NCBI GenBank assembly: GCA_002269645.1
Contig: NIVC01002646.1
Coordinates: 1 to 64,000, forward strand
Direction of reading: 5' to 3'
DNA length: 64,000 nucleotides
From: Macrostomum lignano
Taxonomy: Eukaryota
Below the pieces are notes generated by a model. That model searched no databases, was not told where the DNA came from, and was given only the letters and a program-made list of their open reading frames with translations. The position numbers and the translations under genes were made by a program. The number at the start of each line of letters is the position of its first letter. Position 1 is the first letter of the stretch. Shown piece after piece: positions 32,801 to 55,700 of this stretch.

Positions 32801-35252
32801 GATTTTTAGAGATTCACTGTAAAATTTTGTGAGATTTCGAGACACGCCTCTGCCTGTCTGCTCGCCTTTAGGGGCTAGCGGAATGGGTGACCCTCGCCTC
32901 CCCGCTGTGTCTACCGACCACCCTGCAGCTAAATCAAGAAGGGATTTTAGGAGATTATTCACTGGGAGATTACTGTGAGATTTCGAGAGATATACTGTGA
33001 GATTTCGAGAGATTTACTGTGAGATTTCGAGAGATTTACTGTGAGATTTCGAGAGATTTACTGTGAGATTTCAAGAGATTTACTGTGAGATTTCGAGAGA
33101 TATACTGTCAGATTTCGAGAGATTTGCTGTGAGATTTCGAGAGATTTACTGTGAGATTTCAAGAGATTTACTGTGAGATTTCGAGAGATTTACTGTGAGA
33201 TTTCAAGAGATTTTTCTGTGAGATTTCAAGAGATATACTGTGAGATTTCGAGAGATTTACTGTGAGATTTCAAGAGATTTTTCTGTGAGATTTCAAGAGA
33301 TATACTGTGAGATTTCGAGAGATTTACTGTGAGATTTCAAGAGATATACTGTGAGATTTCGAGAGATTTACTGTGAGATTTCAAGAGATATACTGTGAGA
33401 TTTCGAGAGATTTACTGTGAGATTTCAAGAGATATACTGTGAGATTTCGAGAGATTTACTGTGAGATTTCAAGAGATATACTGTGAGATTTCGAGAGATT
33501 TGCTGTGAGATTTCGAGAGATTTGCTGTGAGATTTTGAGAGATTTACTGTGAGATTTCGAGAGATATACTGTGAGATTTCGAGAGATTTACTGTGAGATT
33601 TCAAGAGATATACTGTGAGATTTCGAGAGATTTGCTGTGAGATTTCGAGAGATTTGCTGTGAGATTTTGAGAGATTTACTGTGAGATTTCGAGAGATATA
33701 CTGTCAGATTTCGAGAGATTTACTGTGAGATTTCGAGAGATTTACTGTGAGATTTCGAGAGATTTACTGTGAGATTTCGAGAGATTTACTGTGAGATTTC
33801 GAGAGATTTACTGTGAGATTTCGAGAGATATACTGTGAGATTTCGAGAGATTTGCTGTGAGATTTCGAGAGATTTACTTCGAGATTTCGAGAAATTTATT
33901 GTGAGATTTTGAGAAATCTACTGTGAGATTTTGAGAGGTTTACTGTAAGATTTGGAGAGATTTATTGTTAGATTTTTAAGAGATGTACTGTGAGATTTTT
34001 TAAAGATTTACTGTGAGATTTTGAGAGATTTACTGTGAGATTTGGAAAGATTTATTGTGGGATTTTGAGAGATTTCCTATAAGGTTTTGAGAAATTACTG
34101 TGAGATTTCGAAAGATTCACTGAGATTTTGCGATCAATTCAGACAAACTACCATTCGATGGCAGTATAGAGTTAGGAGCTATTTATAATTACCCATAGCC
34201 TAGCTTAATAACAAATTAATGAGACTGTCTCCATGCAGCTTAGTGCGGGCGATTTTGCTTTGCACTTACCTTTGTAAATTGTTAATCAGTAGGTCGATTG
34301 CGCTTGAGTTATAAACAATACTAAGTGCCCTTACTTAATACAGCACGTTTCCTAATGTTATTTTTAGAATCTGTAGTTACATTGACTGTCTGTTAGTCTG
34401 TCTGTGTGCGTCATTCAGCAGGTCATAGTGATTAGATTAGTATAGGCCATAATGTGCTAGTCTCTGAATAATTTATGATCGACATCCTCATTGACGTGAT
34501 AAAGCTAACTTTTTACGATTGGCGATTGACACGTTCGAAAGGTTTTTTTGTAACTCTGCGCACACTATGCGTCCTGCTGTATGAATGATGAGCATAGGTT
34601 TCATTTTATGGCATTGTAAAGACTCAGGGAGGGGTTTAGCAGTGGTTCATCCTGAAGATTCAGGGAGGGGGATAGCAGTGGTTCATCCTGAAGATTCAGG
34701 GAGGGGTTTAGCAGTGGTTCATCCTGAAGATTCAGGGAGGGGTTTAGCAGTGGTTCATCCTGAAGATTCAGGGAGGGGGATAGCAGTGGTTCATCCTGAA
34801 GATTCAGGGAGGGGTTTAGCAGTGGTTCATCCTGAAGATTCAGGGAGGGGGATAGCAGTGGTTCATTCTGAAGATTCAGGGAGGGGGATAGCAGCGGTTC
34901 ATCCTGAAGACTCAGGTAGGGGATAGCAGCGATTTATCCTGAAGACTCAGGTAAGGGATAGCAGCGATTTATCCTGAAGACTCAGGTAGGGGATAGCAGC
35001 GGTTCATCCTGAAGACTCAGGTAGGGGATAGCATGTATATCTGAGTTCTAACCACGGCACCCTTTTCCCCAGGTGTTCGTGGCCAACCCGCACAAGCCCC
35101 GTGCAGTGCAAAGCATCCTGGTGCAGAATCGGGACCGGCTTGTGGAGTTTCTGCAACGCTTCCAGTCTGACAGACAGTCGGACAGTCAGTTTGTTGATGA
35201 GAAGCAATATCTGATCCGTCAGATTCAGGAGCTGAGTCCTATCGAAGCTTGA
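29859..35252 (+). CDS. CAB39: MO25 / calcium-binding protein 39 family, 358 aa, 4 exons
   Basis: Exons 29859-30290, 31743-32063, 32454-32597 and 35073-35252, all GT-AG and phase 0. Motifs: [82 protein letters not shown]. Confidence 0.95.
30355..31672. repeat. 30-bp minisatellite in MO25 intron 1
   Basis: Unit AGTCATTAGAATCGCCTAATATGGTCATCC. Confidence 0.95.
32632..34130. repeat. 22-bp minisatellite in MO25 intron 3
   Basis: Unit TACTGTGAGATTTCGAGAGATT, interrupted at about 32845-32945. Confidence 0.95.
32850..32940 (+). mobile_element. Very short 3' end of an RNase H LINE inserted in the minisatellite
   Basis: GGGGCTAGCGGAATGGGTGACCCTCGCCTCCCCGCTGTGTCTACCGACCACCCTGCAGCTAA closely matches the reverse complement of 56895-56957. 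Confidence 0.8.
34620..35031. repeat. 36-bp minisatellite in MO25 intron 3
   Basis: Unit GATTCAGGGAGGGGTTTAGCAGTGGTTCATCCTGAA. Confidence 0.95.
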
Positions 35253-35453
35253 CCTGAACTCATTTTTTATGGAACTCAAGTTATGATTTTACAAGGCTGG
35301 CTCTTTAAATTTTTAACATCTTTATGAGAGATCCAATAATATTCCTTATGATTTTCCTCTTCATTTTATACTGTAATCTCATTAATATTCCTTACTCAAT
35401 AAGATTAATCTTTAAATTGCTGCATTTTATTTACTAAGATAAAGTGTGATTTC

Positions 35454-35459
35454 AATAAA
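35454..35459 (+). terminator. Candidate poly(A) signal of MO25
   Basis: AATAAA about 200 nt after the stop, followed by T/GT-rich sequence. Confidence 0.5.
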
Positions 35460-35564
35460 AATTAATTAATTGTTTTTGATATGAGGTCATCGTTATTTTC
35501 GTTTTCTTGTTTTTTAATTAGTTTTATTCGCAGGCTCAGATATTAGGGATATCACAGATAAAAC

Positions 35565-35945
35565 ATCAAATATTGAGCATATAACAGGCCAAATATTAGG
35601 GATATAACAGGCCAAATAGTGGGGATATAACAGGCCAAATATTAGGGATATAACAGGCCAAATAGTGGGGATATAACATGTCAAATATAAGGAATATAAT
35701 TCAGGCCAAATATTAGGGATATAACAGGCCAAATATTAGGGATATAACAGGCCAAGTATTAGGGATATAACAGGCCAAATATTAGGGATATAACAGGCCA
35801 AATATAGGGATATAACAGGCCAAATAGTAGGGATATAACGTGTCAAATATGAGGGATATAATTCAGGCCAAATATTGGGATATGATAGGCCAAATATTAG
35901 GGATATAAGAGATCACATATTGGGGTTATAACAGGCCAAATATTA
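35565..35945. repeat. 23-bp minisatellite, intergenic
   Basis: Unit GGGATATAACAGGCCAAATATTA. Confidence 0.9.
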
Positions 35946-36339
35946 GGGTATAGCATGTAAATAATGTGTTTGCGTATACAATGATATTCTTTGTAAAAAC
36001 AATATAGTTTGCTATTATTAATGTGAAGGTGCTGCCTTAAATTTTTCAATCAATTGCCTGTATTTTCATCGCTGATTTTTGCTGCCTATTTCGTAGATGT
36101 GTTATTAGAGGTGGTTAAAGTTTTGTTGAGCAGGAAATATTTGCTTAATTCTGTTTTTTTTTCAATGAACTACTAATCCGTCCATACGTTTCCTCGCTTG
36201 TTGAGGCTTGTGCCTTGGTTTTACCAAAAACAAAAAAAAAATTTTTTTTATTCTCATTAGCAGTAAAATGCGTTGGCTTTGTTTCATTTTTTGTTACATG
36301 AGCTTATTTATCACATCATCAAAAAGTTCCCTATTCCAA

Positions 36340-36725
36340 TATTCACAATTCGAATATTCACTATTTTCACAAACCCAGTATTCACATTTCAGATATTCCC
36401 TATTTTCACAAACCCAGTATTCACAATTCGAATATTCACTTTCACAATCCCAATATTCACACAGCCTTCAAAATTCCAATCGTCACAGTCTTTACAATCA
36501 CAATCTTAACATCATTCACAATCCCAATCTCCACAGTCTTCACAATCCCAATATTCACAGTCTTCACGATCACAATCTTCACAGTCTTCACAATCTCAAT
36601 CTTCACAATCTTCATATTCACAGTCTTCACAATCCCAATATTCACAGTCTTCACAATCCCAATATTCACAGTCTTCACAATCTCAATCTTCACAGCCTTC
36701 ACAATTCCAATATTCAATCTTCACA
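36340..36725. repeat. ~24-bp degenerate minisatellite, intergenic
   Basis: Unit approximately TTCACAATCCCAATATTCACAGTC. Confidence 0.85.
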
Positions 36726-36905
36726 AAACTAAAAATAGATATACGAAATAGCAATTAAGTGATTAACTCTGATTTATCACACCTGTTTCAGCTTCAACCG
36801 TCTTCTGCAGAACAAAAAATTGCTTTTAAAATTAAGAAATTAAACAAAACAGCCGGGCCTCTGGGGCGAACTGGTTGTTGACCCTGCGCTGGTCAGCCCT
36901 CGAGC

Positions 36906-39900
36906 ATGTCGATGCTTGCTTGGTTTCCAGTCTCCGGGCACCAGTTGACACCGCTGTTACTTCTGCTGGTGCCAATTGACCTGATTTTGTGTCAGGTAAA
37001 TGTTATTAACATTCTTAAATAATGTTATTCTTAATGTCAGATTCTCAACCTGAGATTCTCATCTCATTGTCAGATTCTTAACCTGAGATTCTCATCTCAG
37101 TATCAGGTTCTCAACCTGAGATTCTCATCTCAGTGTCAGATTCTAAACCTAAGAATTTCATCTCAGAGTCAGATTCTCAATCTGAGATTCTTAATGTCAG
37201 ATTCTCAACCTGATATTCTCATTGTCAGATTCTCAACCTAAGATTCTCAATGTAAAGATTCTCTACCTGAGATTCTCAATTTCAGATTCCGACTATGAGA
37301 TTATTATCAAGGCTAAAGAGTCTCACTATGAGATGCAATTTTCATCTCAATACTCACAGAAAAATCCAACATTAAGAGTATTCTCCTGTCTCAACACCTG
37401 CTCAGCAGAATCGGGACCCAGATTTCGGCAATTCCAATTCCCGACTCATCCAGCATGAGCCAGGCGCCATCCTCCACAAGGAAGTGCGTCAGAAGCTTGC
37501 AACTCCAGCTGTACCAACGCAACGTCCCATACCTGACGATGTTGGCCTAGCTGGGGAGAACAACTTTGCGCTGTTGGACCCGCCAGACACTGAGTTTCAC
37601 GTTTGGCGAGCGCCGTTCCCCAGCCTCGGTGAGGCCTGGCCCCGACCGACTCGTCAGTACACCAGTCGCAGTCGGGGTCGCATTACCGCGCCGGAGCAGC
37701 TCAGCTTAGCGGCTAAAGAATTTCAGTTTGTTTTAACTAGCCCAACAGAGTCTGATTGTCCGATAGCGGTTGTTGAGCTGCTCAAAATGGCTTTTCAACG
37801 GTATAGGCGGGTGATTGTTGATCAGAGAGCCGTTAGTGTGGCCGCTGGAGCTGCCGCTGATGCTGATGGACACATTTGGCAGCTCAGTGTGCGGCTGACT
37901 ATTCAGTCTTCTGATGAAAAGTGGCGAACGGCGCCTCTGATGCCCAGTCTGGACATGGATGAGAGCTGTGAGAGCTGACTGTTTTATGTGTAACTTTCTT
38001 GATTTTGGATTTTATGTTTCTTGTAAACTGCGTGTCTTCTATACATTGCTGCAGTCGTGTGTGCGGTCAGTTTCTTCTTTTCTCTAATATTCTCTCTCCT
38101 CTCCTCTAATCTCCTCTACTCTCTTCTCCTCTGTCTCCTCTCTTCTCCTCTCCTCACCTCTTTTCTCTTCTGTCTTCTCTCTTCTCCTCTACCCGCTTCT
38201 GTCTTTCCTCTACTCTCTTATCCCTCCTTCCCTCTCCTCTCCCTACATCTATTCTCTCTTCTCTCTCCTCTCCTCTCATATTCTCTCTTCTCCCCTCTCC
38301 TTTCTTCTCCTCAATCCTCTAGCCAACTCTGCTATTAACCGCCTTAAGGGTAAAACTAGCTATGCAAAAAAGATTTGCATATAATCTACGTTATATGCGC
38401 ACAATATAACATAATAATATTATTAATTTGCTTAGTCAAAAAGGTTTTTTCCTGTCAGTGTCGCGCTATCAGTGTGGCTCGATGCATTTCTGCTCGTAGT
38501 TAATTATCTATATTTCTTCTTTAATTAACCGCTCTTAGACACGCTAAAGATTAGCAAAACTGAAGCGGTGCTCAGTGCCCCAGAGCCGTGGGGTGTTCTG
38601 CGCGGCCTGCAAACTTTCAGCCAGCTGGTGTGGCAGACTCAAGATGCAGCTGTGAGTTCCGCTTATCATTCATTATTATTACATATTTTCACATGAAGTT
38701 AGCATTGCCCGTCTGTTGTTATTAATTTCAGCTGTACGTTAACAGTACAACAATATTTGATAAGCCAAGATTCAAGCACCGCGGCTTGCTGGTGGATACG
38801 TCCCGACATTACCTAAGTATGGAGACTCTAAAAACTAATCTAGTGAGTTTCTATTGTTGATTGCACTCAGTCTGTGTGTCTGCGTTGGTGTCTGTCTGTC
38901 TGTCTCTGTGTGTCTGTCTGTCTGTCTGCCTGTCTGCCTGTCTGCCTTGGTGCCTGTCTGTTTGTCCGTCTGTCTGTCGTCTGCCTTGGTGTAGGTCTGT
39001 CTGTGTCTGTCTGTCTGTCTCTGTGTGTCTGTCTGTCTGTCTGCCTTGGTGTAGGTCTGTCTGTGTCTGTCTGTCTGTCTCTGTGTGTCTGTCTGTCTGT
39101 CTGCCTGTCTGCCTTGGTGTCTGTCTGTCTGTCTGTTTGTCCGTCTGTCTGTCTGCCTTGGTGTAGGTCTGTCTGTGTCTGTCTGCCTGTCTGTTTGTCT
39201 GTCTGCCTGTCTGTTTGTCTGTCTGTCTGTCTGCCTGTCTGTTTGTCTGTCTGTCTGTCTGTATGTCTGCATATCAGTCTGTCTTTCTGTCTGTCAGTCT
39301 GCCTTAGTGCCTGTATGTCTATCTATCCATCTATTTTTTAAACCTACAGGACGCCATGGAGATGAACAAGTTAAATGTATTTCACTGGCACATTGTGGAC
39401 GATCAGTCGTTTCCCTATCAGAGTGTGGTATTTCCTAAGCTATCTGAGAAGGTAAAAAAACGTTTTAAAGTGTTTTTTACTATGCTTTAATTATTTGTTT
39501 ACTCTAAACAACATTTTTTAACACACAGGGCGCATATGATAGTAATAGCATTTACTCATTATCCAATATTCGAGAGATAATTGAGTACGCCAGAGTTCGG
39601 GGCATACGAGTTATACCCGAGTTTGACACGCCTGGTAAGTCATGCCGAACTTTGGTTTGATAAATGCTATGAAAATCCTTCCAGCTGAAGCAAATACCTT
39701 TACCCCAGATGTTCACACACTGGCCATAGAATACAACCCCCTCTACCCCAGATGTACACACTGGTCATAGAATACAACCCCCTCTACCCCAGATGTACAC
39801 ACTGGCCATAGAATAAAACCCCCTCTATCCCAGATGTACACACTGGTCATAGAATACAACCCCCTCTACCCCAGATGTACACACTGGCCATAGAATAAAC

Positions 39901-42900
39901 CCCTCTACCCCAGATGTACACACTGGCCATAGAATACAACCCCTCTACCCCAGATGTACACACTGGCCATAGAATAAAACCCCCTCTATCCCAGATGTAC
40001 ACACACTGGCCATAGAATGAACCCCTCTACCCCAGATGTACACACTGGCCATAGAATAAAACCCCCTCTACCCCAGATGTACACACTGGCCATAGAATAC
40101 AACCCCCTCTACCCCAGATGTACACACTGGCCATAGAATACAACCCCTCTACCCCAGATGTACACACTGGCCATAGAATAAAACCCCCTCTATCCCAGAT
40201 GTACACACACTGGCCATAGAATGAACCCCTCTACCCCAGATGTACACACACTGGCCATAGAATAAAACCCCCTCTACCCCAGATGTACACACTGGCCATA
40301 GAATAAACCCCTCTACCCCAGATGTACACACTGGCCATAGAATACAACCCCCTCTACCCCAGATGTACACACTGGCCATAGAATACAACCCCCTCTACCC
40401 CAGATGTACACACTGGCTATAGAATAAAAACCCCTCTATCCCAGATGTGTACACACTGGCCATAGAATATAACCCCCTCGGCCCAGATGTACACACACTG
40501 GCCATAGAATAAAACCCCCTCACCCCAGATGTACACACATTGGCCATAGAATAAAACCCCCTCACTCCAGATGTACACACTGGCAATAAAATAGAACCCT
40601 TCTACCCCAGATGCACACATACTAAGCCTTTACTCAAGACATACACATCCTCAAGTAACTCAAAACCTTTCCATTTAGCTTAAGTTTTCTATCTATATGC
40701 TACTAAAAGCAGAAATTAAGAAACGCCATGCCTGTAAAATTTTCAGCCCACACGCACAGCTGGTCTCTTGGCTATCCGGAAATTTTCACGCAATGCTTCA
40801 ACTATGCCAACCGCTGGACCGGTTTCTATGGTCCCATGAATCCGGCATTGAATGCTACCTTCGATTTCCTTAAAAAGCTGTACGCAGAAATTTCTAGCGT
40901 ATTCAAAGATAATTATATTCATCTTGGAGCTGACGAAGTTGGCACCTCTTGTTGGTAAGTGTTTAATGTTTATCTGTTGTACTCGTAGCTTATAACAAAC
41001 ATTAATGTCAAAGCTCTATTATCACCTTACAGGGATAATAATCCCATTGTGAATCGAATGCGAGCTGATTTTGGTTTCTCTAGGAGTGATCAGCTGATTG
41101 ATTATTATTTTCGACGGTAAAGTTACTTGCTGTGTGGATTTTAGTTAGTTTGCACTCCCACTCTTCTTTTATTGAATGTTGTTTACACCGTACCAATACC
41201 CACAGATTGCAAAATATCATAACATCTTTGAGTGCCGGCAAGTCAAATAGTAATAAACGCGGTTTTATTGTATGGCAAGAGGCTTACGATCACGGTGTTA
41301 TGGTGAGTTTTGGTGACAAATGGCTTCTGATTCGAGTAAATTCGATTCTTTAGTAAATGTTGTGTGTACATCTGGGGTTGCGAGGAGGTTTTATTTTATG
41401 GCCAGTATGTGCACATCTAGGGTAAAGGGGGGTTTATTCTATGGCCAGTGTGTGTACATCTGGGGTAGAGGGGGTTGTATTCTATGGCCAGTGTGTACAT
41501 CTGGGGTAGAGGGGTTTATTCTATGGCCAGTGTGTACATCTGGGGTAGAGGGGGTTTTATTCTATGGCCAGTGTGTACATCTGGGGTAGTGGGGTTTATT
41601 CTATGGCCAGTGTGTGTACATCTGGGGTAGAGGGGTTTTATTCTATGGCCAGTGTGTGTGCATCTGGGGTAGAGTGGGGTTTATTCTATGGCCAGTGTGT
41701 GTAAATCTATGGTAGAGGGGTTTTATTCTATGGTCTATGTACATCTGGGGTAAAGGGTTTTATTCTATGGCCAGTGTGTGTACATCTGGAGTAGAGGAGT
41801 TTTTATCAGAATGATAACTAATTACAATACATTGAAGTGTAGCCAGTTTTGCAGTAAACTACAGTAACGATCTTTCTGTTTTCTAAGTTTCGAAAACTTT
41901 ATGAAAATCTAACTTAAGTTCAATAATACGCTCGTACTATTAGTAGTAGTAATACAATATGTCTTACTCTATTTTTCTCATTTTAGCTAAAGAGAGGCAC
42001 CATAGTGCAGGTATGGAAAGGCGAAGCCTCCGATGTAGCCATGGTCGCCCAAGCTGGCTACCGAGTTCTCTACAGCACCTGCTGGTACCTGGACAGGCTA
42101 GAGTACGGTCCTCAGTGGACTAAAATGTACCTGTGCGATCCTATTGCTAATTATGCTGGCACTTATAATGGCGGACCGTTTCAACAGCAGATGCCGCAGC
42201 AGCAGCCGCCACCTCAGCAGCAACAGCAGCAGCAGCCACCGCCGCCTTCTTGGATGGCCAACGTTCTTGGCGGTGAAGCCTGCATGTGGAACGAATACCA
42301 AGACGATAATACTGTGCTGCAGAGGATTTGGTAAGGCCACTTGAGGATTGACGCTGCACTCCATCAGATTTTATCTCCTTGAATCCCACACCACATCCTA
42401 TTGAATCCCACACCACATCCTATTGAATCCCACACCCCATCCTATTGAATCCCACACCACATCCTATTGAATCCCACACCACATCCTGTTAAATCCACAC
42501 CACATCCTATTGAATCCCACACCACATCCTATTGAATCCCACACCCCGTCCTATTGAATCCCACACCCCGTCCTATTGAATCCCACACCCATTCTATTGA
42601 ATCCCACACCCATCCTATTGAATCCCACACCCCATCCTATTGAATCCCACACCCATTCTATTGAATCCCACACCCATTCTATTGAATCCCACACCCATTC
42701 TATTGAATCCCACACCCATCCTATTGAATCCCACACCCATCCTATTGAATCCCACACCCCATCCTATTGAATCCCACACCCATTCTATTGAATTCCACAC
42801 CCATTCTATTGAATCCCACACCCATCCTATTGAATCCCACACCCATCCTATTGAATCCCACACCCATCCTATTGAATCCCACACCCCGTCCTATTGAATC

Positions 42901-45900
42901 CCACACCACATCCTATTGAATCCCACACCCCATCCTATTGAATCCCACACCCATTCTATTGAATCCCACACCACATCCTATTGAATCCCACACCACATGC
43001 TATTGAATCCCACATCCATTCTATTGAATTCCACACCCCACCTTATTGAATCCCACACCCATCCTATTGAATCCCACACCACATCCTATTGAATCCCACA
43101 CCACATCCTATTGAATCCCACACTACATCCTATTGAATCCCACACTACATCCTATTGAATCCCACAATTTATCATATTGAATCCCACACGAATCCCATTG
43201 AATCCCACACCAATCCTGATGAAATACCACAACTAAAACCCATAGCTCGTAAATGCTACATCTTCAACCCCAGAAACTCCGCACCACATGATCATTTAGA
43301 ATCAGATTTCAGCCTAAAGTCCTCAACGGCTCCAATTACACTTACAAACCCTGTTCATAAAGCTGGGCTACAAGCTTCACACATTCACCCCCGTGTCCCA
43401 CCAATCCAACAGGCCTCTCGCTTCCGCAGTAGCTGAGCGTCTCTGGAGCTCACCGGAGGCCACTCGCGACCTGCTAGCCGCTGGGCGCCGTATCGAAGAG
43501 CAGCGCTGCAGGATGCGAGCTCGCGGCATCCCGGTCGGCGTAGCCAGCGGCCCCGGCTCTTGTCGGCCGCCGCCACCTGCCGGCAACAGATCAAGGAATA
43601 AGCTTCCAAAAAGGAATAGAAAAATTCCAAAACTAGAGAAACAGTCGCTAACAAATCGAATGGTTGGCGTTAAGCAAACGGCGGCTCCTTTGTCTGCTAC
43701 TGGGTCTGGCTCCTCGAAAAGTGACACCGATTATGCGGACTCCGATCACGACTTGTCGTTTCGTCGATCCCTTGTTAAACGTCGAGGGCCCCAGCAGCAG
43801 CATCAAGATAAGGTAAAATCTAAATCAGTAATGTCAAAATCAGTAATGTCAAAATCAAAATCAGTAATGTCAAAATCAAATTCATTCCTGTCAAAATCAA
43901 AATCAGTAATGTCAAAATCAAAATCAGTAATGTCAAAATCAAAATCAGTAATGTCAAAATCAAAATCAGTAATGTCAAAATCAAAATCAGTAATGTCAAA
44001 ATCAAAATCAGTAATGTCAAAATCAAAATCAGTAATGTCAAAATCAAAATCAGTATCGTTAAAATCTAAATCAGTAATGTCAAAATCTAAATCAGTAATG
44101 TCAAAATCTAAATCAGTAATGTCAAAATCTAAATCAGTAATGTCAAAATCTAAATCAGTAATGTCAAAATCTAAATCAGTAATGTCAAAATCTAAATCAG
44201 TAATGTCAAAATCTAAATCAGTAATGTCAAAATCTAAATCAGTAATGTCAAAATCTAAATCAGTAATGTCAAAATCAAAATCAGTAATGTCAAAATCAAA
44301 ATCAGTAGTGTCAAAATCAAAATCAGTATCGTTAAAATCTAAATCAGTAATGTCAAAATCTAAATCAGTAATGTCAAAATCTAAATCAGTAATGTCAAAA
44401 TCAAAATCAGTAATGTCAAAAATCAAAATCAGTAGTGTTAAAATCAAAATCGGTAGTTTCAAGATCAGTAATGTCAAAATCAAAATCAGTAATGTCAAAA
44501 ATCAAAATCAGTAATGTCAAAAATCAAAATCATTGATGTCAAAATCAAAATCAGTTGTCTTAAAATTAAAATCAGTAATGTCAAAATCAAATTCATTCCT
44601 GTCAAAATCAAAATCAGTAATGTCAAAATCAAAATCAGTAATGTCAAAATCAAAATCAGTAATGTCAAAATCAAAATCAGTAATGTCAAAATCAAAATCA
44701 GTCATGCCAAAATCAAAATCAGTAATCTCAATATTAAAATCAGTAATCTCAAAATTAAGATCAGTAATGTTAAAATTAAAATCAGTAATCTCAAAATTAA
44801 AATCAGTAATGTCTAAATTAAAATCAGTAATCTCAAAATTAAAATCAGTAGCGTCAAAATCAAATTCATTCATGTCAAAATCAAAATCAGTAATCTCAAA
44901 ATAAAAAACAGTAATGCCAAAATCAAATTCATTCATGTCAAAATCAAAATCAGTAATCTCAAAATTAAAATCAGTAATGTCAAAATCAAATTCATTCATG
45001 TCAAAATCAAAATCAGTCATGTCAAAATCAAAATCAGTAATCTCAAAATTAAAATAAGTAATGTCAAAATCAAATTCATTCATGTCAAAATCAAAATCAG
45101 CAATCTCAAAATTAAAATAAGTAATGTCAAAATCAAAATCAGTCATGTCAAAATCAAAATCAGTTATCTCAAAATTAAAATCAGTAATGTCAAAATCAGA
45201 TTCATTCATGTCAAAATCAAAATCAGTCATGTCAAAATCAAAATCAGTTATCTCAAAATTAAAATCAGTAATCTCAAAATCAAATTCATTCATGTCAAAA
45301 TCAAAATCAGTAATCTTAAAATTAAAATCAGTAATCTCAAAATCAAATTCATTCATGTCAAAATCAAAATCAGTCATCTTAAAATTAAAATCAGTAATGT
45401 CAAAATCAAATTCATTCCTGTCAAAATCAAAATCAGTAATGTCAAAATCAAAATCAGTAATGTCAAAATCAAAATCAGTAATGTCAAAATCAAAATCAGT
45501 AATGTCAAAATCAAAATCAGTAATGTCAAAATCAAAATCAGTCATGTCAAAATCAAAATCAGTAATCTCAATATTAAAATCAGTAATCTCAAAATTAAGA
45601 TCAGTAATGTTAAAATTAAAATCAGTAATCTCAAAATTAAAATCAGTAATCTCAAAATTAAAATCAGTAATGTCTAAATTAAAATCAGTAATCTCAAAAT
45701 TAAAATCAGTAGCGTCAAAATCAAATTCATTCATGTCAAAATCAAAATCAGTAATCTCAAAATAAAAAACAGTAATGCCAAAATCAAATTCATTCATGTC
45801 AAAATCAAAATCAGTAATCTCAAAATTAAAATCAGTAATGCCAAAATCAAATTCATTCATGTCAAAATCAAAATCAGTAATCTCAAAATTAAAATCAGTA

Positions 45901-46706
45901 ATGTCAAAATCAAATTCATTCATGTCAAAATCAAAATCAGTCATGTCAAAATCAAAATCAGTAATCTCAAAATTAAAATAAGTAATGTCAAAATCAAATT
46001 CATTCATGTCAAAATCAAAATCAGTAATCTCAAAATTAAAATAAGTAATGTCAAAATCAAAATCAGTCATGTCAAAATCAAAATCAGTTATCTCAAAATT
46101 AAAATCAGTAATGTCAAAATCAAATTCATTCATGTCAAAATCAAAATCAGTCATGTCAAAATCAAAATCAGTTATCTCAAAATTAAAATCAGTAATCTCA
46201 AAATCAAATTCATTCATGTCAAAATCAAAATCAGTAATCTTAAAATTAAAATCAGTAATCTCAAAATCAAATTCATTCATGTCAAAATCAAAATCAGTCA
46301 TCTTAAAATTAAAATCAGTAATGTCAAAATCAAAATCATTCATGTCAAAATCAAAATCAGTAATTTCAAAATAAAAAATCAAATGCAGGTTCCAATCGCA
46401 GAGTATCAACATCGAAATAGGATTTACGCGATTTCCAAGAGCCAGCATCATCAACACCCGGTGGCTCTGTTCCTAGCCCTGGTGCTGGCAGCTCTGGCTC
46501 TGTTCCTGGTGCTGTCCAGAGCGGTGTTCGTGCTGAGAATCACCCGCTACGGTGGCAGCACCGCAGGTTTGGAGTCGGCCGGCTCCACCGAGGGCAAGGC
46601 TGCATGGCTTCTGTGGCCCTGGCTGCGGCCCCGGCGACTCCTGCTGTGTCTGGCCATTGCCGCCGCTTGCAATGTGCTGGTCTGGCTCTGGACTTCTATG
46701 GTCTGA
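36906..46706 (+). CDS. GH20 beta-N-acetylhexosaminidase (HEXA/HEXB-like), 12 coding exons, with C-terminal hydrophobic extension
   Basis: Exons 36906-36995, 37406-37967, 38539-38651, 38732-38842, 39350-39451, 39529-39634, 40747-40954, 41033-41116, 41206-41302, 41987-42330, 43413-43812 and 46389-46706, all GT-AG and in frame. Motifs: [67 protein letters not shown] (catalytic DE), [22 protein letters not shown]. The first and last exons are less certain. HEXA versus HEXB orthology cannot be assigned. Confidence 0.92.
37033..37330. repeat. Degenerate minisatellite in hexosaminidase intron 1
   Basis: Recurring TCAGATTCTCAACCTGAGATTCTCA. Confidence 0.85.
38075..38310. repeat. CT-rich low-complexity tract in hexosaminidase intron 2
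   Basis: CTCTC/CTCCT runs. Confidence 0.9.
38868..39325. repeat. (TCTG)n compound satellite in hexosaminidase intron 4
   Basis: TCTG runs punctuated by GCCTTGGTG. Confidence 0.95.
39695..40620 (+). repeat. ~40-bp minisatellite in hexosaminidase intron 6
   Basis: Unit approximately CCCCCTCTACCCCAGATGTACACACTGGCCATAGAATAAAA. Confidence 0.95.
41362..41805 (-). repeat. Same ~40-bp minisatellite, inverted, in hexosaminidase intron 9
   Basis: Unit TTATTCTATGGCCAGTGTGTACATCTGGGGTAGAGGGG is the reverse complement of the intron 6 unit. Confidence 0.95.
42380..43212. repeat. 21-22-bp minisatellite in hexosaminidase intron 10
   Basis: Unit CCCATCCTATTGAATCCCACA. Confidence 0.95.
43815..46372. repeat. 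21-bp minisatellite filling hexosaminidase intron 11
   Basis: Unit TCAAAATCAAAATCAGTAATG, with a ~840-bp higher-order duplication. Confidence 0.95.
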
Positions 46707-46767
46707 TCTTGAGCTTATTTTCATCGGCTGTTTCACTTCTGTAAATGCTTTTGGCTCTTTCTGTATT

Positions 46768-47372
46768 GTCCACTCTACTCTATCTACTCCCTACTCTATC
46801 TACTCTACTCTATCTGCTCCCTACTCTATCTACTCTACTCTATCTGCTCCCTACTCTATCCACTCTACTCTATCTGCTCCCTACTCTATCCACTCTACTC
46901 TATCTACTCCCTACTCTATCTACTCTACTCTATCTGCTCCCTACTCTATCCACTCTACTCTATCTGCTCCCTACTCTATCCACTCTACTCTATCTACTCC
47001 CTACTCTGTCCACTCTACTCTATCTACTCCCTACTCTGTCCACTCTACTCTATCTACTCCCTACTCTATCCACTCTACTCTATCTACTCTCTACTCTGTC
47101 CACTCTACTCTATCTACTCCCTACTCTATCCACTCTACTCTATCTACTCCCTACTCTGTCCACTCTACTCTATCTACTCCCTACTCTGTCCACTCTACTC
47201 TATCTACTCCCTACTCTGTCCACTCTACTCTATCTACTCCCTACTCTATCCACTCTACTCTATCTACTCTCTACTCTGTCCACTCTACTCTATCTACTCC
47301 CTACTCTATCCACTCTACTCTATCTACTCCCTACTCTGTCCACTCTACTCTATCTACTCCCTACTCTGTCCA
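46768..47372. repeat. 30-bp minisatellite downstream of the hexosaminidase stop (probable 3' UTR intron)
   Basis: Unit CACTCTACTCTATCTACTCCCTACTCTATC, bracketed by GTAAAT (46741) and CTCTAG (47379). Confidence 0.9.
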
Positions 47373-48208
47373 CCTCTAGTTTTCTAGTTAACTCTGGTTG
47401 CATCCTCTGTGCAGCATAATTTCCATGTTGATCTCGCTGTGGCACACGCTTTTTTCTAGCAAGTATTTCTACCTGTCTTACCCTTTCACTTAGTCGATCT
47501 CATCTTCATCTAGTATGCTGCTGTTTTACGTTTCAATTTTGCTAATTTTACTATTCAAATTTTGCACCGTCAAAATAGTCAGGTTATGAATGTAACTTTA
47601 AACATAACAACTTGTGCCTAACACATTAACTCTGTAATACCAGCAGCTTCCTTATTTGATTTCTGTTTGCTTCTGTTTTCGAATAGTTAGATTCGTTTTA
47701 AGCTTTGCTGTACGAATAACTATAACTATACGATAACTGCAGTGTCAGTACATAGATAATCACTACATGTGTAACTGACATCGACTCCAATATACATGTA
47801 GAAGAGACAGTATTCTAATCATTGATTATCCAATCTTTTATAAACATTTCTGATAGCACACCCTGTACTTATCAACTTTGTGTCCGGCATTTTACCCTTT
47901 AAATGTCCTTAAATCAGACTTCCCTTTTCCTTTTTCTATCTAATGCAATCGCCGTTATAACAGTTTGTAGTCAGTGCAAGTTTTAGCGCTGGGGTTGTTT
48001 ATAACAAATATCTTGTAAGAGTATATTTAGTTACATTCTGAAAATTAATAAAAATAAATTAATATTGTCGTGCATGCTTTTATTACTGAAGATTTACATC
48101 AGTTTACAGTTGAGTGTATTTTTATTCTGGATTTATTATGAAGAAAACAATTGACAAATATAACGCATCTGAAGTGTAAATATAATGATTACATTCAGAC
48201 TGTGTCCG

Positions 48209-48257
48209 ATCGGGTCTCAACGAACTATAGAAAGTTTTTCCGTTACGAGACCGTCAT
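48209..48257 (-). promoter_or_regulatory. SECIS element (type II) of the selenoprotein L-like gene
   Basis: Minus strand ATGAC-GGTCTC-GT-AACGG-AAAA-ACT-TTCTAT-AGT-TCGTT-GAGACC-CGAT. It has the non-Watson-Crick core UGAC/CGAU, helix II GGTCTC:GAGACC and AACGG:TCGTT, unpaired apical As and an apical mini-helix. Helix I is weak by eye. AATAAA follows at 48126-48121. Confidence 0.85.
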
Positions 48258-48359
48258 TAATGCGCTATATATATGTCAACTGCGTGTAATGTAATACATG
48301 TAATAAGTCTACTATTTTGGAATGGCAGAATGGATATTGGTATTTGACTGCAACATCAA

Positions 48360-48897
48360 CATCTTGTACCGACAGCAGTCCTTTCAAAACATCCTGTACA
48401 GACAGCAGTCCTTACAAAAATCCTGTACAGACAGCAGTCCTTACAAACATTTTGTACAGACAGCAGTCCTTACAAACATTTTGTACAGACAGCAGTCCTT
48501 ACAAACATCTTGTACCGACAGCAGTCCTTGCAAACATCTTGTACAGACAGCAGTCTTTGCAAACATCTTGTACAGACAGCAGTCCTTACAAACATCTACA
48601 TGTACAGACAGCAGTCTTTGCAAACATCTTGTACAGACAGCAGTCCTTACAAACATCTACATGTACAGACAGCAGTCTTTGCAAACATCTTGTACAGACA
48701 GCAGTCCTTACAAACATCTACATGTACAGACAGCAGTCTTTGCAAACATCTTGTACAGACAGCAGTCCTTACAAACATCTACATGTACAGACAGCAGTCC
48801 TTGCAAACATCTTGTACAAACAGCAATCCTTGCAAACATCTTGTACAATCGGCAGTCTTTACAAACATCCTGTACAGACAGTAGTCCCTACAAACAT
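48360..48897. repeat. 29/35-bp minisatellite between the SelL stop and the SECIS
   Basis: Unit TGTACAGACAGCAGTCCTTACAAACATCT, with or without ACATGT. Confidence 0.95.
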
Positions 48898-49021
48898 ATT
48901 TATCCTAGGGCACGTGTTCTGTACGTCCGTAGTCAATTCTACTAAGTGTTCATATTTTCCGGTAAAATAGCACCAGCATAACATAAAGCGACAAGTTATT
49001 TAATAAGCTACGCTAGCTACA

Positions 49022-51324
49022 CTACATGTACTCGCGACACTTGGCTAGAATAGTATCAATACTCGGTCGGTCAGTAGACGATCCGCCTGCCTGACTAAAC
49101 ACAAGCCGACACTCTGCATCACTACCCGATCCGTTATATTCTACTTTCAGTAGAAAATCGCCACCCATCTGCAGCAGATCCTCTGTGTTCACATCGGCCG
49201 GTTTGTCCGTTTTAACACCACAAGCGGACAGTTGGGCGTAGTGATGGAGAGCCGCTACGCCCCAGCTGTTGACAGCGGAACGATTCAAACCAAAGCGTCG
49301 ATACAGGTCACGTTCCGGGTCGGCGAAGGCACCTACTGAAGGATCATCGGATGTCTCTGTGCATGTACTATTTGGAGTTTTGTCAACTAGGCAGACGCGA
49401 GTTAACCAGTTGCGGATGACGTCTGGATCGGAAGCGAAGCTGATGAGCAGCGGGCGGCAGTGCGCAGCTTGCAGGCTTGGCTGCGCGGGTGTGTAAGATT
49501 TGGGTTATTGTAAATAATATATTATCCATGACAGTTAGTCAGTCAACCTGTCACAATCGCAGAGTTAATACGGCATGCAGTGGCGTAACACGGAGGCGTG
49601 ATCGGAAAACGAAACTTAAAAAGGCCAACAAGCTAGATTTATGACAAGAAATTAACAAGCCCGGGATAGCGGTAGCCCACCAAGAGGCAGGGGCGGGGCC
49701 CACCAAAAGATGGAGGGCGCCCACCAAAAGACAGGGGCTCCCACTAAGAGACAAAGGGTGTCCGCTAAAAGACAAGGACGTCCACCAAGAGACAGGGGTG
49801 CCCGCTAAAGGACAGGTACTCTAACCAAGAGATAGGGGCACCCAGCAAGAGACAGGGGCGCCCACCAAGATCCTTGGGACCCTTAAGTTTGATTAACCTT
49901 TACCTTGATTACTGACTAATCTCTGGACTGTTTTTACAAAACGACACTTACTCTAAGTGGAGCAACCCCTCTCAAGACCCAATTGTCTGGCACAAGTATA
50001 TGCCCCTACCTAGGGCTTTGGGGACGCCTCAGACAAAAATTGAAATACTGTAAACTACTGTATGCATGTGTGGCACCATAGGGTAATAAGTGTGTTTGTT
50101 ATAAAGTCATTCAGAAGTAGGTCATTCAGATAACCCAACATCATGCATGAGTATACATTTATAGCAGGAGATATAGTATATGGATGAACCTAAAGAGGTG
50201 CATACATTTTAAAGTTTAGCTGCCAGAAAAATAAAATTGCCATTTTGGGGAACTATGAAAATGATTTGGTATGCAAACTTTCAAAACTAAAAGGCTCTTA
50301 ACAATCTCTTAATATAAAACTACTCACAAGCCGCAACTGCAACTCTACCGCATGCTGCTGTCATGGATGTCAGGCTAAATGGCGTAGGAAAACTAGCAGA
50401 AGAAATTTAGTTCCTTGGCCAATCAGATTGCTGAGTGGGAGCTGCTGCTTAGTCGTTGCACAGACCAGTTGCATTTGAAGGACATCAGTAGCATTGGATC
50501 CAGGACTTTGAGGTAGCCACTGCTGTAGATATTTTGAATCAAGCTTAGTGAGAAATTCATCCCATGATTCCTATAAAAAAGCAAGAAAAATAATCATATA
50601 AAAATTTTGTAAAATTAATTTTTTAGTACAATAAAAATTTGGTTACCTCAAATTGCAAAAGATTTTCATATACTTCCTGAACCTCATATTGTACAAAATT
50701 TGCTTTGAACAGGGAATCTAATTCCTTGAATGAGTTGACACTGCATCTAAAAATTATCATATATATAAAAAAGTTTTTTTTATTGATCATTAATATATAA
50801 TGCTATTAATTTTTCCTAAACTGCAAATATACTTACTGTTTAAGCATAGATGAATATAAGCCAATCAATCTTCCACAAGTCAGCAATCTTTTGTCAAAGT
50901 TCTCTATACTATCATCTGAAAGGTAAATTTAAAAGACAAAAAGTAGTACACTTAGAATGTTTGCAGGGTATCAATTTACCTGTGAATAGTTGAAATTTTC
51001 AGTTTTTAATTCTTAATTTCTTAATTTAAGATCAAATTTAAGATTTAAATTTTAATTTAAATTAAGATCAATTTAAGATCTTAATTTAAGATCAAATTAA
51101 GTTTTTAACTTAATTTGATCTTCAACTAACGATTTTTAATTATTGATTATCTTGGAAACTTATTTTGCACTTAAATAACCAATTGATAATGAAAAACAGA
51201 CTTTTTGAGAAAACAGCTAACGATTACAAAGAAAGGCTTACTCACCTGCAAAAGTGTCCTTCAATTCAAGCAATACTTTGTTGGCATTTTGAATAAAACT
51301 ACTGACTGCAGAGAGGAAGTCCAT
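49022..51324 (-). CDS. SELENOL: Selenoprotein L-like (thioredoxin / AhpC-TSA fold, UxxU motif, two Sec), 319 aa, 5 exons
   Basis: Exons 51324-51246, 50915-50837, 50746-50647, 50570-50328 and 49480-49022, all GT-AG, 960 nt total and in frame. Protein: MDFLSAVSSFIQNANKVLLELKDTFADDSIENFDKRLLTCGRLIGLYSSMLKQ..VYENLLQFEESWDEFL..KFLLLVFLRHLA-U-HP-U-QQHAVELQLRLPSLQAAHCRPLLISF..FADPERDLYRRFGL..DLLQMGGDFLL..DRPSIDTILAKCREYM*. TGA codons at 50372-50370 and 50363-50361. SECIS downstream. Confidence 0.92.
49675..49870. repeat. ~20-bp degenerate minisatellite in SelL intron 4
   Basis: Recurring CCCACCAAGAGACAGGGG. Confidence 0.8.
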
Positions 51325-52734: not shown

Positions 52735-55700
52735 TCCCAGGCGATCTAGGACGGTGTCGATCGATCATTGCCTGGAACAACGCCGCCCTCTGGCGGCCAG
52801 TTAGGGCCTCGGACGGCAGGACTGCACTCTCAGAACGAAGGCAGCCCAGGCAGCCCGCGGCGATGTCATAAATCTTTGCGGACGCCGGAAACCAGACCGC
52901 CAAGGTAGGTGAACCGCTGACAACGCGGGGCTCCATCGCCTGTCCATCAACCCCCCAGCACAAAATCACAGCCCCGATGTCTTCCTGCACGTAAATCAAG
53001 CACGACAGTTTTCTGCGTGTTGACCACCAGGCGACACTCGCCGCATCATCAACTATAGATTGTACAGTTGTCTGGGCGCCCTCAAAAGTTTAGGTCAGCA
53101 GGGCAAAATCCTCGGCGCAGCCAAGCACGCTGAGCTGTCTCTCCGGTTGACGTCGATCCACGCGTCGCCGCATCAGAAAGCCGTCGTCGTTGTGTAGGAA
53201 GAGCGGTCCGCAGCACCCAGTCAAGCACCAGAACGAACAGGAACGGAGCAAGCGTATCTCCCTGAAGCACCCCGGTGGATGTCTCAAAAAAGTCCGATAG
53301 GCCGTCCGGTGTTGATACAGCAGCTTTCGTATCACGGTACATCGCCATGATAGCGGAAATCAGCTGCTCTGGCCCGTTGTACGCACGGAGCACCTTTGGG
53401 AGCACAAAACTGACGACCGAGTTGAATGCCTTCTTGAAATTTATAAAGATAACAATCAGGATCGGTGGCGCATCCGCGCCTCCTCGATGACTCGGCGAAG
53501 AGCTAGGATCTGCGTCACTGTGCCGCGATGGGGCCGGAAGCCGATCTGCTCAGGACGCAGATACGGATCCAGCACGGGCTGCGCCTGCGATAGCAACATC
53601 CGGTTTAACAGCCTCGCAGCGCAGGATTCTTAGAAATTGCGACAATGTGCGCCCTGGTTCACTCGTTGGGTGCCTCCTCACCGAAGAGCACTCTGCAGTT
53701 TATCACTCTGGCAACCTCGCTGGCTACACAGTAGATGCTAAGCGCATCGATGGGCACCCCATCGGGATCCAGCGCTTTCCCGCGTGGTGTCTGTTGCGCG
53801 AGCCTCACAATGTCGACTGTGCTGATGAAGAGTTGATTCGGGAGGTGATCAGTCTCCCGAAAACTCCCACTTCCAGACACTTAAGCCTGGGAACAAAATA
53901 AAGTGATCACTTACTGTTGCGGGCTCCTCTTCTGTGTAGTGCAGGTTCTCCGAGCTCGTTTCTTCAAATCTTCTTCTTCTCCGGAGGAATCTTCTTGAAG
54001 TCTCGAATCGGCCGAATGAGAGCGTGACGATCAAATCAGGCGACGTCGCAGTATTTCTCGAATGCAAATCAATATAGGCCTTAAGCTCAGTAATCAATAT
54101 CAACGATGCGCCCTTGTAATAAAATCAACTTTCTGTAATAATCACGAGGACCTCCAAGAGGGACGTCTTCTTCTAGATCTAACGGAATCGGAGTCGTGTG
54201 CTCCTATCGGTTAATCTAGGATAACCAAAATCAATCAATCGATAATCCTCTAAGGGTATCGGAATCGGTCCGCAGATCCAATCCAATCCCTTAGGAAAAT
54301 GGGAGGCCTCAAATTCAATGAACTCAGTCCAAACGACTGGACAGTAACGGCCGGCAATAAATCGCTCTCAAAATCAATAACAAAGGCTCGAGCAACGGCT
54401 CACCAATTGGTTTATCTCTCTCTCAGAGATGTAGCCTCGCTTAGCTGTTCCAGCAAGCTCCAAGATCTTTAGAGGCTGCTCCGAGTCCCAAGATCTTTTG
54501 AGGCTGCTCCGAGTCTGAGATATTTAGCTGAGGAAAAATTGTTGAGAAACAGCTTATTTTTAGTAGGTGACAGTTTCGCGCTTTGGAAATTTGACCCCTA
54601 TGGAATACAATAGCTTTGAGCGCCGATACCATATTCGGAGTTCTAAATTTAAATGTTGCAAAAGATGGTCACTTGTTGTTTTCGTGGTCTTTAAAAATAA
54701 AGTATGACAATTTGCAGTTTTTGTAACATTCGAGTTTTTCGCATCTTCATGTTGCTACTTATAGTAGTCTACTTTGTATCTTATTTGGAGATCTCTACAC
54801 TGACTCATGCTAGGCTGAAAATCTCCTCTTCCAGCAACATAATATCAGGGGGCAGGGTCAGACTGTCTGTGGCAGCGGGGGCGGCGGCGCATTGAAAATG
54901 GCGGCGAAGAACTCACGCAGCTCGTTCCTGCGCTCGTCGGCAGAGTCACCCGCCAGGTTTAGCGGAATGCGCCGCTTTCGCCCCATCAGAGAGTTGAAAG
55001 CCGACCAGGCCACGCGACTTCTCTGTCACAAGGACCACTGTATATAGCTATATACCGTGGTCCTTGGTCTGGCATCGGGCCCAGCGGCGGAGAGGGCCTG
55101 AATGGCGTCATCAACAGCAGCCTGCTGCAGATAGACTGCTGCAGATAGACTGCTGCAGATAGACTGCTGCAGATAGACTGCTGCAGATAGACTGCTGCAG
55201 ATAGGCTGCTGCAGATAGACTGCTGCAGATAGACTGCTGCAGATAGACTGCTGCAGATAGACTGCTGCAGATAGACTGCTGCAGATAGACTGCTGCAGAT
55301 AGACTGCTGCAGATAGACTGCTGCAGATAGACTGCTGCAGATAGACTGCTGCAGATAGACTGCTGCAGATAGACAGCCGCCAAGGCCTCCTCTGCCTCGC
55401 GGGTTGGCCGCCTGCTCAAAAGGAGTCTCTTCTTCAGCACTTCCCTCGCTTGCCCAATCGCGGGGTCGTCTTGCCATATCGGCTGCCCCCGCTGGGCCGG
55501 TCGCATCAGCGGGACTGCTTGTTCTGTGGCGGCCCGAACTGAAACACACACAACTCCGCGTACTCGGCACCTCCACAATTGCCACCGAGCGCAGTGATGA
55601 AAGCGCTATCAAAGCGACTGTGCGTGTCGGCGTTCCTGAGCACGCGGTCGTAGCCGCTGCAGCGAACGGTAGAGCGAATCGCGAAGACAAAGGTCGCAGA

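Follow-up and report, generated by a model that had tools for sequence, protein, structure and literature searches.

A probable type II SECIS element downstream of the selenoprotein L gene of Macrostomum lignano

Known SECIS elements and the locus under study

Selenoprotein L (SelL) is a protein with two selenocysteine (Sec) residues, both of which are inserted through a single selenocysteine insertion sequence (SECIS) element (PMC3316567). The core consensus of SECIS elements is UGAN/KGAW, in which K denotes G or U and W denotes A or U (PMC3753652); the KGAW half is a preference of the consensus and not an invariant sequence. Flatworms possess the Sec machinery together with SECIS elements that follow the consensus (PMC2873472). 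The element considered here lies on the minus strand of a 64,000-nucleotide (nt) stretch of DNA from the flatworm Macrostomum lignano (assembly GCA_002269645.1, contig NIVC01002646.1, positions 1 to 64,000), referred to below as the window. A hairpin at 48260–48209, downstream of the stop codon of a SelL gene, had been described in an original prediction, made from the letters of the DNA, as a type II SECIS element of this gene. The analysis supports that description: the host gene is SelL, the hairpin lies on the right strand and ahead of the poly(A) signals, and it is the only consensus-compatible element in that interval. We consider it probable that the hairpin is the functional type II SECIS element of the M. 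lignano SelL (SELENOL) mRNA.

The closest described systems are the SelL SECIS elements of fish, molluscs and other aquatic eukaryotes, which share with the candidate their location in the 3′ untranslated region (3′UTR) of a gene encoding a U-x-x-U motif and the use of one element for both UGA codons (PMC3316567). The original prediction had pointed out that one element would have to serve two closely spaced UGA codons, which is no obstacle, as this is the published rule for SelL (PMC3316567). The architecture is shared as well and includes the AUGA core, a helix II of 11 base pairs (bp), a run of adenosines, the apical mini-helix that defines type II, the opposing GA and a long basal helix. 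The differences are found in the details. Elements elsewhere read U/G-GA-W and have 11 nt from AUGAN to the A-run, whereas the candidate reads CGAU and has 13 nt; they lie 19–430 nt from the stop codon, whereas the candidate lies 765 nt from it, behind a 540-nt minisatellite. In addition, helix I is formed here only across a 47-nt insertion of two hairpins, and the candidate reaches 13 bits in a model of the SelL family in which held-out members reach 10–33 bits.

With regard to the Rfam family RF00031 (SECIS_1), the candidate fits the descriptive consensus, i.e., a UGAN core, a GA opposite to it, a helix II of 10–13 nt, an unpaired AA and an optional helix III (PMC3753652), and differs from the family in giving no match to the model, in the C at the K position and in a non-canonical internal loop and helix I. 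Within the same phylum, the TGR/TR genes of flatworms also have SECIS elements, and these depend on the same machinery. They are reported to fit the consensus in the quartet and the unpaired AA and to conserve little of their sequence beyond that (PMC2873472). They belong to other host genes, and the likeness to them is drawn from their published description.

Sequence and fold of the hairpin

Read on the minus strand from 48260 to 48209, the hairpin is UUA-AUGAC-GGUCUC-GU-AACGG-AAAA-ACU-UUCUAU-AGU-UCGUU-GAGACC-CGAU. Its 5′ core AUGA (48254–48257), followed by C48253, contains the UGA that forms the 5′ half of the non-Watson-Crick quartet and is aligned to the AUGA columns of R3, the largest of the covariance models discussed below. 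The 5′ strand of helix II (48240–48252) consists of GGUCUC (48252–48247), a GU bulge (48246–48245), which R3 sets as an insertion, and AACGG (48244–48240). The unpaired apical run AAAA (48236–48239) corresponds to the conserved SECIS adenosines and is aligned to the AAA columns of R3. It is followed by the mini-helix, or helix III (48224–48235), in which ACU (48235–48233) and AGU (48226–48224) pair around the 6-nt loop UUCUAU and which assigns the element to type II. The 3′ strand of helix II (48213–48223) is composed of UCGUU (48223–48219) and GAGACC (48218–48213), and the 3′ core CGAU (48209–48212) brings the GA (48211–48210) opposite the UGA, with C48212 facing C48253.

Helix II comprises 11 bp, six in the lower and five in the upper part, one of them a G.U pair; its 5′ strand is 13 nt long with the 2-nt bulge and its 3′ strand 11 nt. 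This length falls within the 10–13 nt expected of helix II between the core and the apical adenosines, and the unpaired AA(R) is provided by the AAAA. The AUGA and the GA directly flank helix II, in the position required for the tandem sheared G.A/A.G pairs, and R3 places both of them in its core columns. The minimum-free-energy of the inner hairpin is −12.4 kcal/mol, with the mini-helix present in the fold, and the centroid structure predicted by ViennaRNA contains the hairpin as well as the minimum-free-energy structure does. The predicted helix III, with its 3 bp, supports the assignment to type II marginally. All the bases and pairings named in the original prediction (AUGAC, GGUCUC/GAGACC, AACGG/UCGUU, AAAA, ACU/AGU and CGAU) are thus found on the minus strand as described. 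Its statement that they reproduce the established SECIS core holds for the AUGA/GA and the apical adenosines; the C at the K position is off-consensus.

The host gene

The gene upstream of the hairpin, on the same strand, is a genuine SelL homologue, as judged from its sequence. Its last coding exon (49022–49480, minus strand) contains 152 codons and the TAG stop codon at 49024–49022, begins after the acceptor cgcag|CCA, and is identified by the Pfam family AhpC-TSA_2, protein search, alignment and tblastn. The protein encoded by this exon is 99% identical to a UniRef gene model of M. lignano, in agreement with the origin of the window. An exhaustive HMMER search with the exon (49480–49025) gave 46 homologues at E ≤ 1e-3, namely two M. 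lignano UniRef models (99% and 94% identity) and 44 remote homologues; no match was returned by a word-indexed protein search with the same exon, and no sequence relatives of the host protein were found in the PDB. The proteins matched are SelL/PRXL2C-like. One of them, P0010, represents a 90%-identity cluster that includes 'selenoprotein L' and 'peroxiredoxin-like 2C' of Biomphalaria glabrata. The composite protein matches Pfam PF13911 (AhpC-TSA_2; E = 3e-5) and PF00578 (AhpC-TSA; E = 1.8e-5), both just under the gathering scores.

The U-x-x-U motif, which in SelL replaces the CxxC of the thioredoxin fold, is encoded by the preceding exon (50328–50570, minus strand), bounded by the acceptor ttatag|GAA and the donor CTT|GTGAGT. 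The exon encodes VFLRHLA-U-HP-U-QQH, its product reading ...GTKFLLLVFLRHLA-U-HP-U-QQHAVELQLRL, and it is spliced in phase to the last exon (49480–49022). The two in-frame UGA codons (50372–50370 and 50363–50361) are aligned to the U or W positions of the homologues. A further interval at 50647–50763 (minus strand; ...FKELDSLFKANFVQYEVQEVYENLLQFE) with the donor GAG|GTAACT is probably the preceding coding exon; it gives a weak tblastn match (E = 2.8) and appears colinear with residues 57–96 of P0005, within the N-terminal domain of the homologues.

For comparison, 33 homologue loci (labelled with L below) were collected from Logan transcript assemblies, one NCBI mollusc genome and JGI metatranscriptomes. 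The motif LLRHFA-U-LP-U-RD is found in frame at the aligned position in over 25 of these loci, and the two UGA codons of the window fall at its U-x-x-U positions, which identifies the host as a SelL gene in need of a SECIS element. The alignment also shows that the conserved residues of the family, D..R.LY..FGL.RS, QMGGDF and DRPS, are kept in the last exon of the window.

The public gene models miss SelL in M. lignano. The two UniRef models, A0A1I8IZH1 (993 amino acids, 'protein kinase domain-containing') and A0A1I8FVG9 (3935 amino acids, 'RNase H domain-containing'), both omit the UGA exon and attach the final exon of SelL to sequence with no relation to the gene, and the annotation of SelL in M. 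lignano is therefore wrong. Similar traces are seen in other organisms. The gene calls for L001, L002 and L003 (proteins P0005, P0003 and P0015) render both SelL UGA codons as W, apparently through a genetic code in which UGA is read as tryptophan, and elsewhere the calls break SelL into two open reading frames (ORFs) at the U-x-x-U. Such W-for-UGA or split-ORF calls are a handy signature for finding selenoproteins in these databases. In three metagenomic loci (L026, L027 and L030), one of them on a 28-kb contig, U-LP-C, with one Sec and one cysteine, stands in place of U-x-x-U. They may be SelL-like genes of bacteria, and the sequence after them yielded no SECIS element of the eukaryotic type.

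Position in the 3′UTR and chance expectation

The AUGA of the hairpin starts 765 nt after the TAG stop codon. Three AAUAAA poly(A) signals (48079–48137, minus strand) follow the hairpin, at 48137–48132, 48126–48121 and 48084–48079, the first of them 72 nt after the GAU of the element, and on the minus strand no AAUAAA is present between the stop codon and the hairpin. The strand and the order of stop codon, element and AAUAAA given in the original prediction agree with these coordinates, and the 3′UTR would accordingly extend through the element. Its distances, about 770 nt from the stop codon and about 85 nt to the AATAAA, are corrected to 765 and 72 nt.

The frequency with which such a hairpin arises by chance was estimated with a SECISearch-style descriptor applied to both strands. 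It consisted of AUGAN, 10–13 nt, AA, an apical part, a complementary strand with at most two bulged nt and one mismatch, and NGAN. In the 128 kb scanned, both strands counted, seven matches were found, of which the candidate is the best and the sole one with at least 12 pairs. Forty dinucleotide-preserving shuffles gave 0.175 matches at the level of the candidate per 128 kb, which corresponds to about 0.001–0.002 expected in a 3′UTR of about 0.9 kb on the right strand. When the descriptor was relaxed to accept GUGA, other apical dinucleotides and more irregularities, the only other match in the UTR was a poor one of 8 bp at 48953, and the matches further downstream lay in TGA-rich tandem repeats. 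The candidate is therefore the only credible match between the stop codon and the poly(A) signals, even under the relaxed rules.

SelL elements of other organisms and covariance models

The same architecture recurs in the SelL homologues. At least 17 homologous transcripts carry, 19–430 nt past their stop codons, elements of the form AUGA (or GUGA)-N-11 nt-AAA-mini-helix-...-NGA. Compensatory changes occur in all 15 of the modelled pairs of these elements, and 87% of the cells are paired vs 34–46% when the partners are slid, in an alignment that was itself fitted to the structure. The energies of the inner hairpins range from −4.9 to −18.2 kcal/mol, and that of the candidate lies within this range. 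The K position is U or G in all the collected SelL elements except L003, which has A, and the W position is violated in L005 and L032. Long basal helices are present in the homologue elements, with one extra hairpin on the 3′ side in L005, L007 and L009. Some SelL transcripts contain a tandem pair of SECIS elements in the 3′UTR, at 586–638 and 834–886 in L020 (also in L022 and L023) and at 1104–1161 and 1437–1494 in L009. These pairs come from marine metatranscriptomes and Logan assemblies, and both members score 37–53 bits in the models; SelL is described as a one-SECIS gene.

The covariance models R1–R3 were built solely from the SelL elements of other organisms, none of them taken from the window. 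The 3′ halves of the SECIS set could not be aligned by MAFFT, and the model was therefore bootstrapped in three steps. The first model, R1, with a gap-free seed of three sequences, missed the candidate. One sequence of the set, L013, was dropped as a false member with a GCGA core. The third model, R3, built from 16 sequences, aligned the candidate over its whole length at 13.0 bits, which ranks second on the two strands of the window. The E-value is 1.8 for the window and 0.0025 for a 91-nt stretch, or about 0.013 when scaled to the 943-nt UTR on one strand. True elements held out of the model scored 32.8 (L005), 20.9 (L019) and 10.4 bits (L032). The score of the candidate is at the low end of real elements and is meaningful only since the gene defines the search space beforehand. 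The best R3 match in the window is another one, at 35975–36031 on the plus strand (16.9 bits, E = 0.18). This AT-rich stretch, AAUGAU...AAAA...UGAA, has seven non-canonical pairs, adjoins the end of a 23-nt tandem array and looks spurious.

The basal helix and a possible junction at the SECIS base

The hairpin is part of a larger predicted domain. In the minimum-free-energy fold, and as an inverted repeat in the sequence, a basal helix I is formed between a 5′ strand at 48259–48283 (minus strand), composed of GCAGUUGACA (48283–48274) and AUAUAGCGCAUU (48270–48259), and a 3′ strand at 48147–48169, composed of GAUGCGUUAUAU (48169–48158) and UGUCAAUUGU (48156–48147). This long-range helix has 22 bp, with 10 bp between 48283–48274 and 48156–48147, 12 bp between 48270–48259 and 48169–48158, and several G.U pairs among them. 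Two small hairpins are predicted between the 3′ core and the 3′ strand of helix I (48175–48209), namely UCGGAC-ACA-GUCUGA (48209–48195) and UGUAA-9 nt-UUACA (48193–48175), and the basal helix encloses them together with the SECIS hairpin. The original prediction had called helix I weak, and locally a canonical helix I is indeed lacking; the 22-bp long-range helix around the element had been overlooked.

The whole domain, 146 nt at 48285–48140 on the minus strand, folds with −45.3 kcal/mol (z = −5.72), and none of 200 shuffles was as good. The opposite strand reaches −33.7 kcal/mol (z = −2.46), and the far weaker fold of the complementary strand argues for a structure at the RNA level on the mRNA strand. 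The element is present as a single copy in the window, and an origin of the inverted repeat from a miniature inverted-repeat transposable element was ruled out, since the window holds no other copies. In the thermodynamic fold the core UGA is base-paired to a UCA close to helix I; this pairing is not decisive because thermodynamic models do not represent the G.A quartet.

Kink-turns are also known in an elaborated form, the k-junction, in which the partner helix of the kink-turn core lies across one or more extra junction helices. The arrangement of helix I, AAU and GA in the candidate resembles the 3-nt bulge of a k-turn, a structural analogy drawn from the minimum-free-energy prediction. We know of no SECIS element that works as a k-junction. 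It is a tentative and rather doubtful suggestion of this fold that the candidate would be a functional SECIS with an unusual junction, its kink-turn core (UGAC/CGAU, with C.C as the fourth pair) being placed at a multi-helix junction. The modelled geometry is to be taken with the same caution: a 3-nt bulge (AAU) would follow the 22-bp helix I on the 5′ strand, and a 47-nt insert of two hairpins would separate the GA from helix I. If such a junction-type base is true, the recognition by SECIS-binding protein 2 (SBP2) would tolerate a k-junction-like SECIS base. The three homologues with an extra 3′ hairpin give a hint of a recurring SelL variant of this kind.

Proposed mechanism and alternative explanations

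As a functional SECIS element, the RNA of the 3′UTR would fold into a type II structure, in which the AUGA/GA quartet, kink-turn-like and with tandem sheared G.A pairs, forms the base of the 11-bp helix II, and the unpaired A-run and the small apical mini-helix cap it. Below the core, the 22-bp long-range helix would close the domain, enclosing the two extra small hairpins. The SBP2 would bind to the core and recruit eEFSec with Sec-tRNA[Ser]Sec, enabling the ribosomes to insert Sec at both UGA codons, which lie three codons from each other and precede the element by about 1.24 kb once the mRNA is spliced. The product would be a peroxiredoxin-like protein of the thioredoxin fold with a U-x-x-U redox motif. 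This would complete the evidence for a diselenide (U-x-x-U) SelL in M. lignano, a model flatworm of regeneration and ageing. It also provides a concrete, testable SECIS element for a two-Sec gene, which deviates where prediction tools penalise, in the C at the K position, the bulged helix II and the hairpin-interrupted basal helix. Should it be shown to work, it would offer SECIS predictors a difficult and useful test case; apart from this, both the gene and the element in it are to be expected.

Several observations weigh against a functional SECIS element. The core is UGAC/CGAU, in which the W position fits and the K position is C, a base that does not occur there in any of about 18 SelL elements. 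Owing to the GU bulge in helix II, the distance between the AUGAN and the A-run is 13 nt and not 11. The canonical local helix I and internal loop are absent, with 1 nt (A) on the 5′ side and the 47 nt of the two hairpins inserted on the 3′ side. An ATTAAA at about 48997, some 25 nt past the stop codon, could give rise to an mRNA isoform devoid of the SECIS. The SelL motif of the host is divergent, and the R that is invariant after the second U in the homologues is replaced by Q. Among the models, R2, with 11 sequences, scores the candidate at 6.0 bits only, in a local alignment, and the 13 bits of R3 equal the best background level (13–14 bits in 80 kb, and likewise in a 128-kb search), which is the reason why the R3 score is significant only with the search limited to the UTR. 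Finally, Rfam gave no SECIS match at the candidate, either for the whole window at gathering thresholds or for 1.2 kb and 101 nt at E ≤ 10, the latter corresponding to a SECIS_1 score below roughly 13 bits.

The gathering score of SECIS_1 is 35, and its sensitivity to SelL elements is limited. Among the SelL controls it scored L033 at 35.9, L020 at 34.4 and 30.9, L015 at 29.3, L009 at 22.9 and L005 at 16.1 bits, and gave no match for L001–L004, L007, L008, L011 and L032. Since only about half of the SelL controls are detected by SECIS_1, its silence is mild evidence against the candidate and no refutation. The original prediction had staked itself on covariance-model scores, and the outcome goes half against it, with none from SECIS_1 and 13.0 bits from the SelL-specific R3.

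These observations could mean that the hairpin is a chance look-alike and that the true SECIS lies elsewhere, being non-canonical, located in a further 3′ exon or invisible to the patterns and models. The silence of SECIS_1 points in this direction, as do the R3 score at the background ceiling together with a top match in the window that looks spurious, the off-consensus C at the K position (PMC3753652), the bulged helix II and the atypical helix I. Such an explanation is nevertheless unlikely: only about 0.001–0.01 matches of this kind are expected in the UTR, the minus strand past the stop codon offers no other candidate save artefacts in TGA-rich tandem repeats, and the strand-specific and very stable domain in which the hairpin is set is directly followed by the poly(A) signals. 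The doubt may also concern the gene, whose copy in the window could be non-functional or decaying, the hairpin being a relic SECIS or no SECIS at all after the loss of recoding. The motif RHLAUHPUQQH departs from the near-invariant RHFAULPURD, the last exon has two insertions relative to the homologues, the Pfam scores remain just under the gathering cut-offs, the region is rich in minisatellites and holds a decayed reverse-transcriptase ORF, and the public gene models omit the UGA exon. At least three consecutive exons nevertheless keep an open frame and good splice sites, with no stops but the two UGA codons, the conserved residues of the family are retained, and the protein encoded by a second copy in M. 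lignano shares 94% identity. Flatworm proteins in general are fast-evolving, which also counts against decay, and we regard it as very unlikely.

A long inverted repeat with a strong fold may also serve other purposes, and the 146-nt domain could act in mRNA stability or localisation, be a small-RNA precursor or derive from the inverted repeat of a mobile element, with the AUGA...GA being incidental. Weak microRNA-like Rfam matches would fit such a role, but they are confined to the neighbouring repeat array, and the domain itself matches no Rfam family. It is a single copy in the window and therefore not a dispersed repeat, its helix contains G.U pairs, and its other strand folds much more weakly. 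Furthermore, this explanation leaves unexplained the coincidence of a complete set of SECIS motifs with a gene that needs a SECIS, and it is highly improbable.

Repeats and other features around the gene

The minisatellite between the stop codon and the hairpin (48358–48897, minus strand) is built of 29/61-nt units in about 18 or 9 copies with 87–90% matches, and its 540 nt make up most of the SelL 3′UTR between the stop codon and the SECIS. The microRNA-like Rfam matches in it are weak (E 0.06–8) and look like repeat artefacts. The 847-nt intron between the U-x-x-U exon and the last exon contains a further tandem repeat (49675–49870, minus strand) of 20–21 nt, with about 10 copies and 67–69% matches.

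Downstream of the gene, tandem arrays dominate 17 kb (30363–47378). They include 30-nt units in 44 copies at 30363–31670, 22-nt units in 52 copies at 32966–34122, 41-nt units in 22 copies at 39697–40619 with an inverted counterpart at 41361–41806, 22-nt units in 39 copies at 42379–43217, and 30-nt units in 20 copies at 46769–47378. A further array, of 21-nt units in 121 copies at 43834–46377, is TGA-rich and the source of many false SECIS-pattern and UxxU matches.

The decayed reverse-transcriptase-like ORF (FKKAFNSV...LQGDTLAPFLFVLVLDWVLR) at 52749–53498 on the minus strand has six in-frame stops and lies upstream of the SelL gene or in one of its introns. It is probably a remnant of a long interspersed nuclear element, and a motif resembling it is found on the plus strand near 18773.

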